Shown one piece after another: positions 19,932-41,969 of a stretch of DNA of 64,000 nt. The DNA lies in contig NW_027270965.1 in NCBI RefSeq assembly GCF_040938485.1, positions 744,001 through 808,000 of the forward strand. Direction: 5' to 3'. This DNA is from Diadema antillarum (taxonomy: Eukaryota). A program made the translations under genes and the position numbers. The stretch's first letter is position 1; every line of letters begins with the position of its first letter. A model generated the notes under the pieces. It searched no databases. It had not been told where the DNA came from and saw only the letters and a program-made list of their open reading frames with translations.

Positions 19932-20069
19932 GGGGACCGTTTCATGAAACTTTTTGTCAGTGATTTACACCGACAACTGTTTAAAGCTACTGAAATCCTT
20001 GCGTCTGATTGGCTGATAACAAATTTGTCGGTGAAAACCTCCGACGAACTCGTTGATGAAACGCCACCC
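19932..20069. mobile_element. Short MITE with central GATTGGCTGA, abutting the TAF13 start region
   Basis: GGGGACCGTTTCATGAA ... TTGATGAAACGCCACCC imperfect TIRs; no clean TSD seen. Confidence 0.55.
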
Positions 20070-20130: not shown

Positions 20131-20169
20131 ATGGCAGAATACTCCGGATCTGCAGCCACAGCAACGGAG
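20131..20169 (+). CDS. TAF13: TAF13 coding exon 1 (MAEYSGSAATATE), predicted
   Basis: gaaATGG start context and GAG|gtaaat phase-0 donor, matching the phase-0 acceptor at 28585; exon 2 has no in-frame ATG nearby. Confidence 0.6.
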
Positions 20170-20396
20170 GTAAATGTGTCTCTTGACAGTTAAAGATCAC
20201 TGTTTATACTTATTGCTTAATGTACAATTGCAAGCTAACTGAAATGTTATGGGATTATCGATGTACCACAGTAACGTTCACATGCAAACAGTCTTGAGGC
20301 CTAACAAGTATTGTAGTAGGTAAGCAACACTGTAGTCCCATAAGTTGTCTTTGATGTGGCATTTGCCTTGAGAGTTAAAACTCTGCCTGTATAATG

Positions 20397-27746: not shown

Positions 27747-28585
27747 AGCTTACGAAGCCGATAGTTACCGCTGTTCATTTTCAAAACTGAAGGCAAACAT
27801 CCGGCTTTTTTTGGTGGCCCGGCGTGCGTTTTTGGTGACGCCGGTCGCAAATAAACCATTCGCGAAATCGTGATTCGATTCGCGAAAAGACTCCGCTAAA
27901 TCGCTACACTCGGCAGGGGCTACGTCGTCCTTTCATCAGGTCTCGTTACAAAACCAAAATCTCGTGCGAGTTCTTGCGTTACCTATCGTTAATTTTAACG
28001 AAACATCGTTAATTTGCGTGAGGGATCGTTACTCATCGTTACTCATCGTTACTCATCGTTACTACAAACGTTAATTTTCCCGATCGTTACTTTGCGTTAC
28101 TAACGATTCAGGTGAAACCGCTTGCGTTAATGAAACGTTAATGTTGATTAACGCAAAGTTTCTTTTGGTATATATTGTAAGTACAATAGATCCCCAAAAT
28201 CTATTTTGAATGGAAAATTGTAACAAAAAAAAAGGAGGGGGGTGGGATGAATGAGATGAGAAAGTAGCTGTGAGCCTGTGCTACGTGACATAACATTACG
28301 TAACATTGATGCGATGTTGTGGAGGGATTCTACCTGGATACAAAAGCTCCAGATTTTGATTTACAAGTGTTGGTAGCTTTGGCACCATTTCAGAGGTGCC
28401 CATATGCTTTATATTTTTTCAGTACTATGATGTATATGTGTACATATGCATCTAGACAGTTCCTGTTTTGTCAATTCATTGTTCAGTGTAGTATTGGTGG
28501 TATTAAGTTATGAATTTTAAGTTTACTCACACTATGGTACCTTATCTATTTCGTGACGTCATCATTATGTCTCCCATGGAAACAG

Positions 28586-28685
28586 GATTCTGAAGAACCA
28601 CAAGACTTTGACCCCTCGGAGGCGGATCAGGATGTACATGTGACTGAGAGTACTGACAAGAAGAAAAGGCTCTTCACCAAAGAGT
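28586..28685 (+). CDS. TAF13: TAF13 exon 2 (DSEEPQ...KKKRLFTKE)
   Basis: cag|GAT acceptor; KKRLFTKE matches the TAF13 KRKRLFSKE motif; T|gtgagt phase-1 donor. Confidence 0.88.
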
Positions 28686-29232: not shown

Positions 29233-30894
29233 GGGATTGTATAGTTTTGGTTGAGACCTAATTTCAGGTTTCTAACATTTTTGTCCCTGCCGAACGAGTT
29301 CGAGCAGGGGACTATGAAACGGGCTCCGTACGTGTGTGTGTCTGTGCGTCCGTCCGTGCGTCCGTCCGTGCGTCCGTCCGTGTGTGCGTCCGTGTGATCA
29401 AAATGTTCAATTTGCTACTTCTCTGTCATTTATGAGCCAATTTTGATTCTGTTTGCTTTATATGATAGCACTACATGGGAGCTTTAAAACTTCTACACAG
29501 AATTTCAGTTGTGACCTTTGACCTTGACCTTTGACCTATATTGTACATTTTGCAACAAAATGCTACTCCTTCGCCATTTCTAACCCGATTTCGATTCCGT
29601 TTGCTTTATGTGATGGCACTAGGTGAGGGCTTCAAAACTTCTACACAGAATTTTGACCTTTGACTTCTTTGACCTTTGACCTTGATTTTTGACCTATATT
29701 GTACATTTTGCTACAAAATGCTACTCCTTCGCCATTTCTAACCCGATTTCGATTCTGTTTGCTTTATATGATGGCACTAGTTGAGGGCTTCAAAACTTCT
29801 ACACAGAATTTCGACCTTAGACTTCTTTGACCTTTGACCTTGATTTTTGACCTATATTGTACATTTTGCTACAAAATGCTACTCCTTCGCCATTTCTAAC
29901 CCGATTTCGATTCCGTTTGCTTTATGTGATAGCACTAGGTGAGGGCTTCAAAACTTTTTCACAGAATTTTTACCTTTGTCTTCTTCGACCTTTGACCTTG
30001 ATTTTTGACCTATATTGTACATTTTGCTACAAAATGCTACTCCTTCGCCATTTCTAACCCGATTTCGATTCCGTTTGCTTTATATGATGGCACTAGTTGA
30101 GGGCTTCAAAACTTCTACACAGAATTTTGACCTTAGACTTCTTTGACCTTTGACCTTGATTTTTGACCTATATTGTACATTTTGCTACAAAATGCTACTC
30201 CTTCGCCATTTCTAACCCGATTTCGATTCCGTTTGCTTTATGTGATAGCACTAGGTGAGGGCTTCAAAACTTTTTCACAGAATTTTTACCTTTGTCTTCT
30301 TCGACCTTTGACCTTGATTTTTGACCTATATTGTACATTGGCTACAAAATGCTACTCCTTCGCCATTTCTAACCCAATTTCGATTCCATTTGCTTTATGT
30401 GATGGCACTAGGTGAGGGCTTCAAAACTTCTACACAGAATTTTGACCTTTGACTTCTTTGACCTTTGACCTTGATTTTTTACCTATATTGCACATTTTGC
30501 TACAAAATGCTACTTCCGGCGGGGACATATATTACGCACCGCGTAATTTCTACTTTTCCTTGTTTGGTGAGAAAATGAGAAACCTCTTATGAAATATGAC
30601 AGAGCATTTAATTCCACGAGGAACTCAACATTTATTTGATGAAAATTGGTTTTGAAATGGCTGAGATATCCAAAACAGAGCGATTCTAATAAAGTGTGGG
30701 ACCCATCTTTATTACGATCGCTTTGTTTTACTTTATTTTTGGATGTTTCAGTCATTCCAAACCCGATTTTCATCAAATCAAGTTTGAATTCCTCTTAAAA
30801 TGGTATGCTCTGTACTATTTCATAAGTGTTTTCTTGGTATCTCACAAAAAGTTAGAAGCCTAATTCTCATCTCCACCAACACTGTACCATCCCT
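29233..30894. mobile_element. Kolobok-like non-autonomous element with TTAA TSD, host of a HINE
   Basis: TTAA at 29229-29232 and 30895-30898; imperfect 25-bp TIRs AGGGATTGTATAGTTTTGGTTGAGA / TCTCCACCAACACTGTACCATCCCT. Confidence 0.75.
29280..30552 (+). mobile_element. Helentron-associated (HINE/pearl-like) element with 158-bp tandem array
   Basis: 5' subTIR TGTCCCTGCCG with nearby inverted copy, (GTCC)-type microsatellite, about 6-7 units of 158 bp (29711, 29869, 30027...), 3' CGGCGGGGACA, hairpin ATTACGC-ACC-GCGTAAT, T-rich flanks. Confidence 0.8.
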
Positions 30895-30971
30895 TTAAGG
30901 ATGCAGCAATCAGCATCTATATGAAAAAGACTATTTTACATTAAATGTCTCTTTCTTCCTTCCCTTGACAG

Positions 30972-31069
30972 TAAGGTGTATGATGTATGGCTTCGGAGAC
31001 GACCAGAATCCATATGCTGAAACAGTTGACTTACTGGAGGATCTGGTGCTGGAGTTTATCACTGAAATG
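30972..31069 (+). CDS. TAF13: TAF13 exon 3 (LRCMMYGFGDDQNPYAETVDLLEDLVLEFITEM)
   Basis: Near-identical to the TAF13 histone-fold segment; canonical splice sites with consistent phases. Confidence 0.97.
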
Positions 31070-31282
31070 GTAAGTGCAGAAAAAACAGCTTCTTGGTAAT
31101 TAATTCGAATAGTTGGAAGGAGAGAGAATCTACTGTGCTAATGTTGTTATTGTCTAGAATGACAAAAGAAAAATAAGACTGTTTGATAGACTGCATGTAC
31201 TTTATATTAACAGGTTTGACAGTAAGCTGGTTTATAGCTGTAACTCTCTCCTGAATATCTCCGTTTCCCTCCTTCTCCACAG

Positions 31283-31447
31283 ACCTTGAAGGCAACGGAG
31301 GTTGGCAGACAGGGCAGGGTTCAAGTTGAGGATATCATCTTCCTGATCAGGAAGGACCCCCGAAAGTACTCCCGCATCAAGCAGCTCCTCCTCATGAATG
31401 AGGAGTTGAAGAAGGCAAGGAAAGCCTTTGACGAAGCCAACTACTAG
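31283..31447 (+). CDS. TAF13: TAF13 last coding exon (TLKATEVGRQGRVQVEDIIFLIRKDPRK...KAFDEANY*)
   Basis: Polypyrimidine acceptor; matches the TAF13 C-terminus; TAG at 31445-31447. Confidence 0.97.
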   Translation, partial: TLKATEVGRQGRVQVEDIIFLIRKDPRKYSRIKQLLLMNEELKKARKAFDEANY

Positions 31448-31921
31448 CCCCCCAGGAGTGGGAGCAGGAGCCCTCTCTTGACTGGTAGGCAGGGTTCCTT
31501 GACCGGTGGGGACATTTGGCAGGAACCTGTGATTCTGACGACAAAGAGGAGTGGAGAGACAACAAACGGACATAATCCCTGTTTGGACCTTTTTCCAAAT
31601 GATAAACTCACTATTCACTCTCAAGTTTGCAACACGTGTTAAGTTTTGTGGAATTCTGAAATAAGTTTTGGATGTTCATTTTATGTGAAAGAGCTTCAAG
31701 TTATTCTGGTCTTCATGAGCAAGGACTCTGAAATTGCTGCACTGGTCGCTATCATTGTACAAGGTTGATGGAAGTTTTGGAGCACAATTTAATTTGTGTG
31801 TTTGGAGAGGAAAGAAAACAGTTTACTGAAGGGTAGAGCACTCATCTGACTCAAGGAGTTGGGGCTCAACTGAAAGTGCTGCATTGGTGATTGTTAACCT
31901 TTCGACCTCCAAACGATCACC

Positions 31922-32311
31922 ATGGGAGTTGGGAGGAAAGGAAAAACCCTCAGTGAAGGGCACCAGAGAATGAACTATCTGTACCAGGCCGCACACTGCG
32001 TGCTGACACAGAACCCCGAGAACTCGCAACTGGCGCGGTTCTACATTGAAACCATGAGGAGGGTGTCCGCCAAACTCGTCATGCGCCTGCAGCCAGACAT
32101 CAAGCGTACCGTGTGCAAAAAGTGCAGCGCCCTCCTAGTACCAGGTGTCACGGCCACGGTGAGGGTCAGAGGTCGCAGGCAGAGGCATGTGGTCGTACGC
32201 TGCCTGGATTGTGGAACGATCAAGCGGTTCAATTCCAATGACAAGCATGTGTTATGGGTAGAGAAACCCGAGGCTGCTGTCCAAGAAGGGAAACAAAGCA
32301 CTTCGTCATAG
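31922..32311 (+). CDS. RPP21: Ribonuclease P protein subunit p21 (Rpr2/Rpp21/Snm1 family), intronless, 129 aa
   Basis: RMNYLYQAAH, IKRTVCKKC and VVVRCLDC (two CxxC zinc pairs); strong start context accATGG; in-frame stop shortly upstream. Confidence 0.93.
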   Translation: MGVGRKGKTLSEGHQRMNYLYQAAHCVLTQNPENSQLARFYIETMRRVSAKLVMRLQPDIKRTVCKKCSALLVPGVTATVRVRGRRQRHVVVRCLDCGTIKRFNSNDKHVLWVEKPEAAVQEGKQSTSS

Positions 32312-32323
32312 TGTTTACCCTTA

Positions 32324-32756
32324 GGCTGCGTTCACATAGAAGTATACTATTCGGGTATTCGGGCTCGTTTTTCGAGGGCACGCGAATAGCTTGAATCGAA
32401 CAATAGGATTTCCTCACACCGGTTCACATAAGAGGGCACTATTCGAAAGTACCGAATACCTGCGAAAAGTATAGCAATGTGGGAATCGAGCTTGTTCGAT
32501 TTTCTTGCAGCGTATACCGTCTCTCGTTTATGAAATAATGACAATTTTGGTCTGAATTTGCCCGTTAGCAAAAATAAGCATGTAGACTGACATTCTGATG
32601 CAGTTTAGAAATTGTTAATAAGATTTGCTGCGATGTAGGAGGAAGAAATCCTCACTACATGGGATGGTGAGTTGACGGTGCGGGTGATGGTGTATTTGGT
32701 GCTCGAATAGCAAATAGCGAATAGCGAATACCGAATACATCTATGTGAACGCAGCC
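32324..32756. mobile_element. PIF/Harbinger MITE
   Basis: TIR GGCTGCGTTCACATAGA; TTA TSD at 32321-32323 and 32757-32759. Confidence 0.88.
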
Positions 32757-35700
32757 TTAGAGCATTGTTTTTAGGTGCTGTATAATTTTCTAGGAAACAT
32801 TTGTAGGAATTTGAATGTACTACAGTTGTAGTTTATATCTAGAGTTGTTTTCAGAGAGCAATACAATTTGATTCCAAGTTGTAGTTTATGTCAAGTATTT
32901 TGCCATCATTGCCTCGTTTTTGTTTTGTACATCACTGTGTTAATTTTTTTGTTCCAAAAGGTGCTAAATCCACAAAATCCAAAGAAATTTTCACTCTCTA
33001 GAAATCAGTGTAGACACATAGATTTTTCTGAGGCGCATTTTCTTTATTCCATCTTGGGACAAAAAGATATTGCATGAAAATACTTAAAAGCAAGTGAAAT
33101 TAAAATCCACGAGTGTTTTTTTTTCCCCTCACACTACCATCAAAGTGGATTTAGCACCTTTGGGAAAAGAACTCTTCAATTGAATACCATAGTTTTATAC
33201 AGAGCCAATGTTGGCAGTACTTGATCATTTGGATTGTGCCAGACTAGTACCAGTGTGTATAAATATCGGATAAACCCGATGTACTGTCTTTGCAGGAAGG
33301 TGGTCCCTGGTCTTAGGAGCCAACGCTTGTGATTTTTCAACTTTTGACATCTGTAGGATCTCTATCCATTTCTATTCATTTGTCAGAGACAGTTTGTTGT
33401 GGTTTTTTGTTTTGTTTTGTGTTTTTCTCTTGAGGTGACTGTCCAATCAGCTAGTAATAATTGTCCCTTACGTGAAATGACCAGGGAATTACACGCATGT
33501 GCTTATCTACTTGTTACATCAATTTATCATACCCTAACTAGGACGGGCTATTATATTAGGTAGATAATAGAGCCGGGGGGGGGGGGGGGGCTATCGCAAC
33601 GAAAATTGGCAGACACACTGCCTATGATGTAATCTAAAGTACCACGAAGTTAGATTTTAAAAAAATTATCATTTATGCTAAATTATGCTAATTTGTGCAT
33701 CATGATGCATGAAATCAGACAATTTGGTATAAATCACTAAATAAAGCTTAAAATGGGCACATTTTTTGTGTAAATATTCTTTTTAGTGTCTTGAGCAAAT
33801 ATAAGGACAAAAAATTGTGCCATCAGAAAAAAATTCTTAAGTATTTTATTGTTTTTTGAATTTCTCATGTATTTCTTTGTTTTTCGACTTTGTGTTTTCC
33901 ATTGTTTTTTCGGTGAAACTTGTCTGCGACATTGTTCCAAACAAGAAAATATGTTATTAATTGATTTCAATCAATAAAACCCCAAAATAATCATGCTTTT
34001 ATGAAATTTGCATGTAAGCACAGTTTGCATTGAAATTGTACACAAATTCACGTTTAAGAGCAATTTTTGATCTGATATGCACGTACATATTTATGCGCAA
34101 CTTCTGAACCGCGCGCCCGGGCATCGCAAATTTTGTGTCAAAAGATGCGGGAGACTTGAAAGAAAAAAGTCATGAAACGTCGCGGCGATAGCTTTTCGCG
34201 TTAGCGATATATCGCGCGGAACCTGGGGGGGGGCCTTGGAGCCCCCCCCCCCCCCCCCCCCCCCCCGGTTTCTCTGTTACACAGTGGAACAGTCAGGTTG
34301 GATATATAACAAGAAACCTAATATAATGAGGCAATCCTGCCGAGCTCATTTCTTTTAGATTCTTGGGTTTTATCCCTGATATACATGTAACAGTATACCC
34401 AAAGGATGAAAAAAAATGTAATTGGTCCTAAACTGGATGTTGTCATAACGTTCCAGTGTACACTGTATCACATTATCAGTTGTAAGTGTATATTTATAGG
34501 CAAGAGTCTCTTCTGACTGACAATTCAATGTAATGGCATTTCTTGAAGTCATATGACTACGCAAAAGCGTGTGCAGTTTCCCACCAAAATTGGAAAGGTA
34601 CTAAGTGAATTATTTTGCTGTTACTTCTGCAATGAACCGCCACTACTGTACATAATAAACTCTGCATGGAGTAAATACCATGGAAGCGTAGCCATAAATG
34701 ATCATTCTTAAAGGAAAGTTATGCAATTACATTGTTTCATATGCTTTTGCAAGAAAGTGATACAACCTTGTATTGGTTACAACCATAATTTCTACAATGT
34801 GAATTAGGCATGGTGATAATGTTATTGCCTCACAATTTTTTTGTTGTTGTCATCATTGTGCACATAAAAGAAAGTGTACATACAAGTATCATGTTTAACT
34901 TTGTAGTAAGATCTTTGCATCAACATTTATAAGCCATTGTAAATCATACATTTAACATAATATGATGGAAAGAGTACATATGTAATCTTTTCTTTTGTAT
35001 GTCATCTTAAAAAGGGGAATGTAGCAATTATTTGTCTGCAGGTTAATGGAAGACATGTGGTTCAATGACACCATCACATCATTTTATTTGCATATTTGCA
35101 ATGTATGTAATATCAACAGTATCAGTTTAGTGAAAATGCATGGAACTTCCAATTTCTTCTTAAACCGCTTTGTCTTTCGTGTCGAATTTCAATGAATGCC
35201 AAGCTTTCTGTTCAGTTGTACTCTACAAAACTGTAGTAACTCATCGAAATTTCTATGTGTTCAACCATTTAAAATGTTTGACGCTTTTGTGCTTTTTCGA
35301 ACCATTTCATGGGATGCTGTTACAATGACAACAGATTGTCATTGTCACTGTCTTTAATGCACCTTAACTGGCTTGTGTCTCAAGCAAAGTTGCCATTAGT
35401 CATAATCATTTTGTACGCACTTGACATTTTGTCAAGGAATATGAGTTTTTAAGGGTTTGAAATTGTATGTATGTACGTATGTATGTGCATACATACTGGG
35501 TTCAAATTGGGCCCATGATATGATATTGCAGCGAAGGTCACTTGGCGTCAAATGTGTAATGTTGTCAATGGGTGTCACAGCATTGTCGCCCGCTCTGCAC
35601 TTTCTTGATGTCGTTCAAATAAAAACGGTGTGATGTTATTTTCTGGTTATTTCTCCTTTTGAACATTGTGTCCGTTTTATGTGTAGAGTGCTTAAAGGAA

Positions 35701-40430: not shown

Positions 40431-40488
40431 TTAATCCATGCCAGGGAAAGACACAGCACTCAGGGTGTTGATGCTTTTCCAAATGGCT
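40431..40488 (-). CDS. C6orf118-like, predicted last coding exon (AIWKSINTLSAVSFPGMD*)
   Basis: gacag acceptor in phase 2, matching the upstream donor; TAA at 40433-40431. Confidence 0.6.
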
Positions 40489-41002
40489 CTGTCATGCACA
40501 GGAGAACATAGAGAGAAAGAAATCTTATACATTCTCCATAGACTTGCCGGGTATACCCGGTATCAGACATTCTAAAAACAAATTTCATTGCTAGTCGAAG
40601 TCCCTTTTATGGTGTTTAGATATCGGACATTTGATTAACGGAACTGGCTCAATTCTGCTTAAATTGGCTGGTTATTGAAGTCAGTCTAATTACTCGACAG
40701 AGATAAGTTGACATATTAACTAATTATAAATCAACAACATAGAGCAGTGGGCACCAAGGTTCATTTACAACAAACAAGGCTACTCTTGAATTCAGATCTT
40801 GTGATAGGTGGAGAGTGCACCACAGATAAGTATTGTGTGAGAATTCACAAATGACTTCTAACTCTACACAGTCATGTACTGCATTTTAAAAATTACTGAG
40901 ACATGTGTCATGCACATATGTGAAGAACATACCCATATGGACGAATTGCCAACTTCATACACATGGAAGAGAGTAGTTTAAAGAAATTGTCCCCAGTCTT
41001 AC

Positions 41003-41064
41003 CTGATGTCGGTCTCTGGTGCATCATATTTCTCCAGAAGCTTGTCGACGTCTGCTTCTAAGCC
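41003..41064 (-). CDS. C6orf118-like exon (GLEADVDKLLEKYDAPETDI)
   Basis: Phase-0 acceptor, gtaag phase-2 donor; 62 nt. Confidence 0.7.
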
Positions 41065-41392
41065 CTGTTCAACAACGCACAAAACAAACATACACAATGA
41101 TAATGATGATGTATGGTACCATGATTACCCCTTAAAATAGCAATGGACTGTTAATTCATGTTCTACACATTCCTGCATAATAGGGTGTTAGTTTGATTGA
41201 CTTGACACAGCTGTTGCACAGATCTTTTTTTTTTCTTTTTCCACTGAGCAGTGCCTAGGGGGATTCATTTTTGTGCTAATAAGCACATATCAGAAGATTA
41301 TAACATCAAGTTTGTTTGAAAGTCTGAATCCTCTCACACATTGCCTGATGCAACTCATGAGAATTCAAAGTGCACGACAACATGATGGTCAT

Positions 41393-41969
41393 TCAAATTT
41401 ATGAAGTTCTTCCGTCGAGATGTTTTCATTGCAACTGATTGACAAATTGCCCTACATCGACGTAAATAAGCACTGAATTGATCAGTGTTTTAGTAGTAGC
41501 CATGATAAAAAATCATGGGCGTACATACTCGAGCAGGATTCGAACCCACGACCTCCTGATCACCGGACAGGCGTCATCTCCACTAGACCACCGAGCTTTC
41601 GCCCGACAGCAAGTGTTGGTTCTAATCCTTATAGCATGCAGCGGGTACTGCTTTGTTATTCAAATTTATGAAGTTCTTCCGTCGAGATGTTTTCATTGCA
41701 ACTGATTGACAAATTGCCCTACAACTTCATAAATTTGAATAACAAAGCAGTACCCGCTGCATGCTATAAGGATTAGAACCAACACTTGCTGTCGGGCGAA
41801 AGCTCGGTGGTCTAGTGGAGATGACGCCTGTCCGGTGATCAGGAGGTCGTAGGTTCGAATCCTGCTCGAGTATGTACGCCCATGATTTTTTATCATGGCT
41901 ACTACTAAAACACTGATCAATTCAGTGCTTATTTACGTCGATGTAGGGCAATTTGTCAATCAGTTGCAA
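41393..41969. mobile_element. TSD-flanked fold-back insertion made of a 267-bp unit with a tRNA-like cassette
   Basis: CATGATGGTCAT at 41381-41392 and 41970-41981; 246-bp inverted arms with one mismatch; direct repeat with period 267. Confidence 0.85.
41801..41872 (+). ncRNA. tRNA-like Pol III cassette (pseudo-tRNA or SINE head); mirror copy on the minus strand in the left arm
   Basis: A box TGGTCTAGTGG at 41808-41818, B box GGTTCGAATCC at 41852-41862; foldable cloverleaf with non-canonical anticodon loop CCGGTGA; T6 terminator at 41886-41891. Confidence 0.7.

Follow-up and report, generated by a model that had tools for sequence, protein, structure and literature searches.

Intronless RPP21 behind TAF13 in sea urchins: a putative retrogene that probably shares its neighbour's transcript

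The question raised by this locus is whether TAF13 and RPP21, two genes that we take to be essential, are expressed from one transcript in sea urchins. The DNA in which it was noticed (the window, i.e. the whole 64,000-nt stretch analysed here) comes from contig JBFRCO010000077.1 of assembly GCA_040938485.1, which is Diadema antillarum OU_Dant_1.0 (PMC13511894). An initial annotation had placed an RPP21 ORF inside the apparent 3' UTR of TAF13. Among the protein subunits of RNase P, RPP21 alone is not shared with RNase MRP (PMC12819141). From the comparison of urchins with other echinoderms, together with one RNA-derived contig, we concluded that the two genes probably share a transcript in urchins.

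The TAF13 and RPP21 genes of the window

The features of the locus are listed in Table 1. The four TAF13 coding exons rebuild the 133-aa RefSeq Diadema TAF13, and the Pfam family PF02269 was found on both of the last two; the last one is 100% identical to residues 80-133 of the RefSeq protein. The end of the gene at 31447 was correctly called (stop TAG at 31445-31447). The exon which it closes had been labelled exon 3 and has to be renumbered, since four coding exons were counted and it is the fourth. Around the TAF13 start, the CpG observed/expected ratio reaches ~1.0-1.36 in the best 300-nt segments. An inverted CCAAT box (GATTGGCT, 20006-20015), found by eye ~120 nt upstream of the start codon, lies within the only CpG-rich part of the gene, and this region is plausibly the TAF13 core promoter. 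Intron 2 contains a 158-bp tandem repeat (6.4 copies, 93% identity, 29512-30514), with a short CGTC-rich microsatellite just upstream of it (29325-29394).

Table 1. Features of the TAF13-RPP21 locus, in window coordinates (window coordinate = L008 coordinate + 10130)
Feature	Coordinates	Strand	Basis and remarks
TAF13 coding exon 1 (MAEYSGSAATATE)	20131..20169	+	GT donor at 20170; L008 gene call begins here
TAF13 coding exon 2	28586..28685	+	AG acceptor 28584-28585, GT donor 28686
TAF13 coding exon 3, histone-fold part	30972..31070	+	Pfam PF02269, E 7.6e-12; aligns with L002 94-188
TAF13 coding exon 4 (last)	31283..31447	+	Pfam PF02269 (TFIID-18kDa), E 7e-16
Spacer, 474 nt	31448..31921	+	No AATAAA/ATTAAA; CpG-depleted; 5 ATGs
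Fast-changing part of the spacer	31768..31887	+	D. antillarum versus D. setosum: 19% substitutions, 36 gap columns
RPP21 (Rpr2) intronless ORF, 129 aa	31922..32311	+	Pfam, 6ahr_K and conserved cysteines
Small element with terminal inverted repeats (TIR)	32320..32760	.	26-nt terminal inverted repeats, 92% complementary; ~440 bp
TSNAXIP1, 3' part, convergent neighbour	40431..41447	-	Pfam PF15739; L008 30301-31317

The complete intronless RPP21 ORF reported on the same strand as TAF13 was recovered with the same limits. It matches the Pfam Rpr2 profile PF04032 over its entire length (positions 1-90 of 90) with a score of 91.4 bits for a cut-off of 29.3 (E 4e-26), and residues 12-125 match human RPP21 as present in the solved RNase P holoenzyme (6ahr_K, E 2e-34); archaeal Rpp21 and yeast Rpr2 match it likewise. 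The zinc-ribbon cysteines C65, C68, C94 and C97 do not vary among 12 aligned deuterostome sequences. The proteins of D. antillarum and D. setosum are 98.4% identical, and dN/dS is 0.04 between these two species and 0.04-0.16 overall across lineages. RPP21 is a single ORF in six urchin-type sequences, and a proteome search which returned 73 homologues gave one RPP21 per urchin. To the question whether this is the only copy, the Diadema, Lytechinus and Strongylocentrotus proteomes thus give a positive answer, no other RPP21 being found in them. With such dN/dS values and a sole RPP21 per urchin proteome, the intronless ORF is, as far as sequences can tell, the working RPP21 gene of urchins.

The small TIR element, which begins 9 nt beyond the RPP21 stop, is best described as a MITE-like insertion into the RPP21 3' flank, and a recent one because it is missing at the orthologous site of D. 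setosum.

Gene order and origin of the urchin RPP21

Whether the linkage is conserved in relatives had been left as a check by the initial annotation. The order TAF13, intronless RPP21, TSNAXIP1 (minus strand) was found in D. antillarum, D. setosum and Lytechinus pictus, and it is therefore conserved; the TSNAXIP1 neighbour is also present in L003, L009 and L007, the latter being the sea-cucumber locus. In L. variegatus and Strongylocentrotus purpuratus the RefSeq protein accessions of TAF13 and RPP21 are consecutive, an indirect sign which implies the same adjacency. RefSeq annotates the two as separate genes.

Two environmental contigs carry the same pair. In the first, from JGI, the opening codons read ...ANY-stop and are followed by RPP21 at a distance of 452 nt; in the second, from ENA, a TAF13 exon precedes an intronless, single-ORF RPP21 by 1.9 kb. 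More generally, an environmental RPP21 clade (L004, L010-L012 and a contig of ERZ26222911, from JGI, TARA and other ENA metagenomes) comprises three intronless sequences 61-66% identical to Diadema, and at least two of its members are linked to TAF13. In the RPP21 tree, which is poorly resolved (150 columns), the environmental sequences P0003, P0005 and P0006 group as a clade of their own; this clade may correspond to an unsampled urchin group. A scan of metagenomes and metatranscriptomes with the RPP21 of this group returned only the JGI contig and distant non-echinoderm relatives.

The situation is different outside the urchins. In the sea cucumber Holothuria leucospilota TAF13 adjoins TSNAXIP1, and tblastn gives no RPP21 in between. 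A 64-aa gene call without Pfam match lies between the two genes (L007 19695-19926); it occupies the urchin position of RPP21, yet has no similarity to RPP21. In the brittle star Amphiura filiformis, no RPP21 was found within 10 kb downstream of TAF13. The RPP21 gene of the crinoid Anneissia japonica has four coding exons spread over 4.2 kb and is located elsewhere in the genome, head to head with a UbiA-family gene. In Patiria miniata, the TAF13 and RPP21 proteins come from contigs that differ in length, which weakly suggests that the genes lie apart; for the RPP21 locus of this genus, a gene record with that exact product was not found. As TAF13 and TSNAXIP1 already form a synteny block, being adjacent in the sea cucumber, conserved linkage is by itself no argument for co-transcription.

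These comparisons support the retrocopy origin which the initial annotation had suggested: the urchin ORF is intronless, versus four coding exons in the crinoid, and it is at a new location. All introns are gone at once, and RPP21 lies between TAF13 and TSNAXIP1 in urchins only, the pair being adjacent without RPP21 in Holothuria. No A-rich tract was noticed after the ORF on reading the sequence. Published dates place the split between Diadema and the camarodont urchins more than 200 million years ago. The insertion, found on both sides of this split, is at least that old, and over such a divergence poly(A) or target-site duplication scars are not expected to survive. Introns lost together, the move into a conserved gene pair, the single copy and purifying selection all argue that the urchin RPP21 is a retrogene which replaced its parent; we infer that the parent gene is truly gone.

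A shared transcript and its alternatives

The RNA evidence comes from Logan contig L002 (SRR6173504_57229, 2039 nt), which originates from another urchin; its TAF13 and RPP21 are respectively 90% and 79% identical to those of Lytechinus. Aligned with the genomes of Diadema and Lytechinus, L002 matches three separate TAF13 exons and lacks the introns; after TAF13 it runs unbroken through a 345-nt spacer, the RPP21 ORF and ~1 kb beyond. Since its TAF13 exons are spliced, L002 is RNA-derived, which means that RNA covers the way from TAF13 into RPP21 without a gap. The earlier proposal of one mRNA for both genes is upheld in part: L002 does join spliced TAF13 to RPP21, but it is a short-read de Bruijn contig, and overlapping transcripts or rare read-through would assemble identically. 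Two repeats were seen in it, an 89-nt tandem duplication in the spacer (498-678, 2 copies, 95%) and, in the distal part (1833-1869), degenerate CCCTAA-like repeats of telomere type. For Diadema, the search gave no RNA contig, and the exact RPP21 protein is on record in the genome assembly alone.

The only further echinoderm Logan contig retrieved with TAF13, L006, represents a polyadenylated TAF13 mRNA of a sea cucumber, and its 3' UTR of 1.07 kb contains no second ORF. An insertion 300-470 nt behind the stop is thus within the length of the TAF13 3' UTR of an insertion-free relative. This mRNA ends after a non-canonical hexamer.

The account that we favour, with a confidence somewhat above even, is that an RPP21 retrocopy inserted in the TAF13 3' UTR or directly behind it, rode on the TAF13 transcription unit, replaced its parent and is still at least partly co-transcribed. 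A processed copy would have inserted between TAF13 and TSNAXIP1 in the urchin ancestor, 300-470 nt behind the TAF13 stop, inside the 3' UTR or just past it. Promoterless, it would have relied on the housekeeping promoter of TAF13, whose RNA then included it as its distal part; expressed in this way, the copy could have taken over, the multi-exon parent being lost afterwards. At least part of the RPP21 RNA would today be a two-ORF TAF13-RPP21 transcript. The link between Pol II initiation and tRNA processing which had been read into the gene pair found no support and is speculation; the borrowing of a housekeeping promoter by a promoterless retrogene is a simpler explanation.

A stronger form of the proposal concerns translation. 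By analogy with what is assumed for human RPP14-HTD2, the two-ORF RNA may be a single mature mRNA and, through reinitiation or internal entry, the main source of RPP21 protein. That urchins translate RPP21 from the second cistron of the TAF13 mRNA, and have done so obligatorily since an orphan retrogene replaced the parent at the base of their lineage, more than 200 million years ago according to published dates, is a tentative idea towards which we remain rather sceptical. Translation of a second ORF behind a first one of 133 codons is normally inefficient, and this, together with the 1-9 upstream ATGs present in each spacer, counts against translation from a shared mRNA.

The alternative which survives best, and which we nevertheless consider less likely, is that of two independent genes in tandem: RPP21 would have its own promoter in the last 50-200 nt of the spacer, the TAF13 mRNA would use a non-canonical signal within the spacer or overlap the RPP21 start, and L002 would reflect the merging of overlapping transcripts or minor read-through. 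The separate RefSeq models agree with it, and count to that extent against the favoured account; the unbroken coverage of L002, from spliced TAF13 into RPP21, speaks against it. The 1.9 kb spacer tolerated by one relative is another point for independent genes and against the favoured account.

The spacer itself bears on both sides. The 474-nt spacer of D. antillarum had been described as devoid of AATAAA and ATTAAA, and a hexamer scan gave the same result; weak variants are present (AACAAA at 31561, GATAAA at 31601, AATAAG at 31660 and AAGAAA at 31812). Spacer length ranges from 299 to 474 nt (474 in D. antillarum, 450 in D. setosum, 299 in L. pictus and 345 in L002). Not one canonical hexamer was found in four independent spacers, for ~3.0 expected from the local rate (Poisson P ~0.05, and 0.07 from shuffles). 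This absence from every spacer examined argues against tandem genes, but the sea-cucumber TAF13 mRNA, with its non-canonical hexamer, makes it weaker evidence than it seems: TAF13 could likewise end in the spacer at a variant such as GATAAA or AATAAG, which is a point in favour of independent genes.

A similar balance holds for promoter features. The lack of a CpG-rich, promoter-like stretch, noted initially for D. antillarum, is real, with a CpG observed/expected ratio of 0.31 versus 0.73 for the whole window. The ratio is 0.16-0.35 in three of the four spacer lineages, compared with ~0.8-1.3 at the TAF13 5' end, and such depletion, which looks like that of a methylated gene body, is unfavourable to a promoter located there. 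The exception is L. pictus, with a ratio of 0.81; its spacer also contains a TATAAA 101 nt before the RPP21 ATG (a TATAAA is present in the L002 spacer too), and these two features favour a private promoter and count against the favoured account. Phylogenetic footprinting revealed no alignable spacer motif between lineages, the sequence not being conserved outside the genus; the lineages have no promoter-like motif in common, which goes against tandem genes, and no sequence of the spacers can be singled out as promoter or translation element. An Rfam scan of 30500-34000 gave nothing near any gathering score, so that the spacer holds no IRES or small RNA of a known family.

For footprinting within the genus, D. 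antillarum and D. setosum are too similar (~95% identity everywhere). The fast-changing part of their spacer (Table 1) varies more than any other part of the locus, the neighbouring introns and the rest of the spacer having only 4-6% substitutions; one 35-nt and one 8-nt indel were seen in it. It covers the interval 35-154 nt ahead of the ATG, the expected site of the core promoter of an independent RPP21 gene, and is in this respect an argument against such a gene. Over the final 34 nt up to the ATG the two species show no substitutions, which is an argument for it.

The position of the upstream ATGs fits either account. Depending on the lineage, the spacers contain 1-9 of them, the last one 47-217 nt before the RPP21 start (154 nt in D. 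antillarum). The ATG-free stretch amounts to 128-217 nt in the Diadema species and L004, and to 47-53 nt in L. pictus and L002. It resembles the short leader that a tandem gene would have, but the distance of the last upstream ATG would suit a bicistron equally well. The RPP21 start context is, as stated at the outset, a strong one (caccATGG). The RPP21 ATG falls in the TAF13 frame (474 = 3 x 158), and the in-frame stop noted before it is one of several: five more stops follow the TAF13 TAG, the last of them 27 nt before the ATG. A TAF13-RPP21 read-through fusion is excluded by these stops between the ORFs.

Far less probable is a third possibility, in which RPP21 shares the TAF13 promoter but a monocistronic RPP21 mRNA arises by alternative splicing of a 5' TAF13 exon to a spacer acceptor. 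Retrogenes commonly use host promoters through splicing, and an AG is available at 31875-31876, 46 nt before the ATG. This AG, however, is not preceded by a pyrimidine tract, and the initial observation that no acceptor directly precedes RPP21 was confirmed, AG being absent from the 45 nt before the ATG. Moreover, the TAF13 ATG is already in coding exon 1, which would leave the TAF13 start upstream of RPP21; the spacer is unspliced in the one RNA contig, L002; and the TAF13 isoforms of L. pictus have the N-terminus as their sole difference.

A dead or untranslated retrocopy in the TAF13 3' UTR, with the real RPP21 elsewhere, would fit an intronless ORF in a UTR-like position, but it is close to refuted: no lineage has a broken ORF, the dN/dS values (0.04-0.16) rule out a pseudogene, the residues of the catalytic-complex fold are conserved, urchin lineages separated for more than 200 million years have retained the ORF, and the Diadema, Lytechinus and Strongylocentrotus proteomes show no other RPP21.

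Known systems and significance

The nearest parallel is found in human, where HsHTD2 is encoded in the 3' UTR of the RPP14 mRNA and is presumed to be translated by reinitiation or leaky scanning (PMC4705651); the precedent invoked initially, an RNase P subunit on a shared mRNA, is thereby borne out. In both cases an RNase P subunit and an unrelated housekeeping protein are on one mRNA (putatively so in urchins), and the second ORF, located in the 3' UTR, follows a first one of ~125-133 codons. They differ in that the RNase P subunit is the first ORF in human and the second in urchins, that the subunit is RPP14 and not RPP21, and that partner and lineage are others; furthermore, the human case was shown experimentally and the urchin one is proposed from sequence.

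The locus also resembles retrogenes that use a host promoter, or that have become orphans: an intronless copy moved into or beside an expressed host, the parent was lost and purifying selection applies. Most of the host-dependent retrogenes described lie in introns, produce fusion or spliced chimeric transcripts, or have gained a promoter of their own. The urchin RPP21 is unusual among them by its 3'-UTR position, its possible two-ORF mRNA and its retention across a whole animal class.

Two other types of arrangement are more remote. In human TRIM39-RPP21, read-through and splicing join exons from two multi-exon genes; there too RPP21 is co-transcribed with its upstream neighbour (putatively in urchins), but the urchin ORFs are separate, with stops in between, and RPP21 is intronless. 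In the spliced-leader operons of nematodes, tunicates and others, tandem genes on the same strand likewise derive from one primary transcript, whereas the urchin RPP21 has no acceptor upstream and the spacer is kept in the L002 RNA. Trans-splicing is not known from echinoderms. A spliced-leader operon was rejected in view of the missing AG in the 45 nt before the ATG, the spacer lengths of 299-474 nt and the retention of the spacer in L002.

A literature search returned no paper naming both TAF13 and RPP21, nor a description of a two-ORF arrangement with a retrogene in a 3' UTR. The TAF13-RPP21 arrangement thus seems undescribed, yet it fits two known classes, the host-dependent retrogenes and the bicistronic genes of animals.

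Should the genes prove independent, the locus would be a clean and ordinary case of gene relocation by retroposition. If RPP21 is translated as a second cistron, it would be the second, independent instance of an RNase P subunit on a bicistronic mRNA, after vertebrate RPP14-HTD2; a two-ORF mRNA that is real and translated would also make urchin embryos, which can be injected, an easy system for studying the translation of a full-length downstream ORF, and would provide a dated example of a promoterless retrogene replacing an essential parent. The RefSeq models of TAF13 and RPP21 in five urchin species may need a shared transcript. On the favoured account, the sole detectable RPP21 of urchins is a retrocopy that has relied, at least historically, on the transcription unit of another gene.
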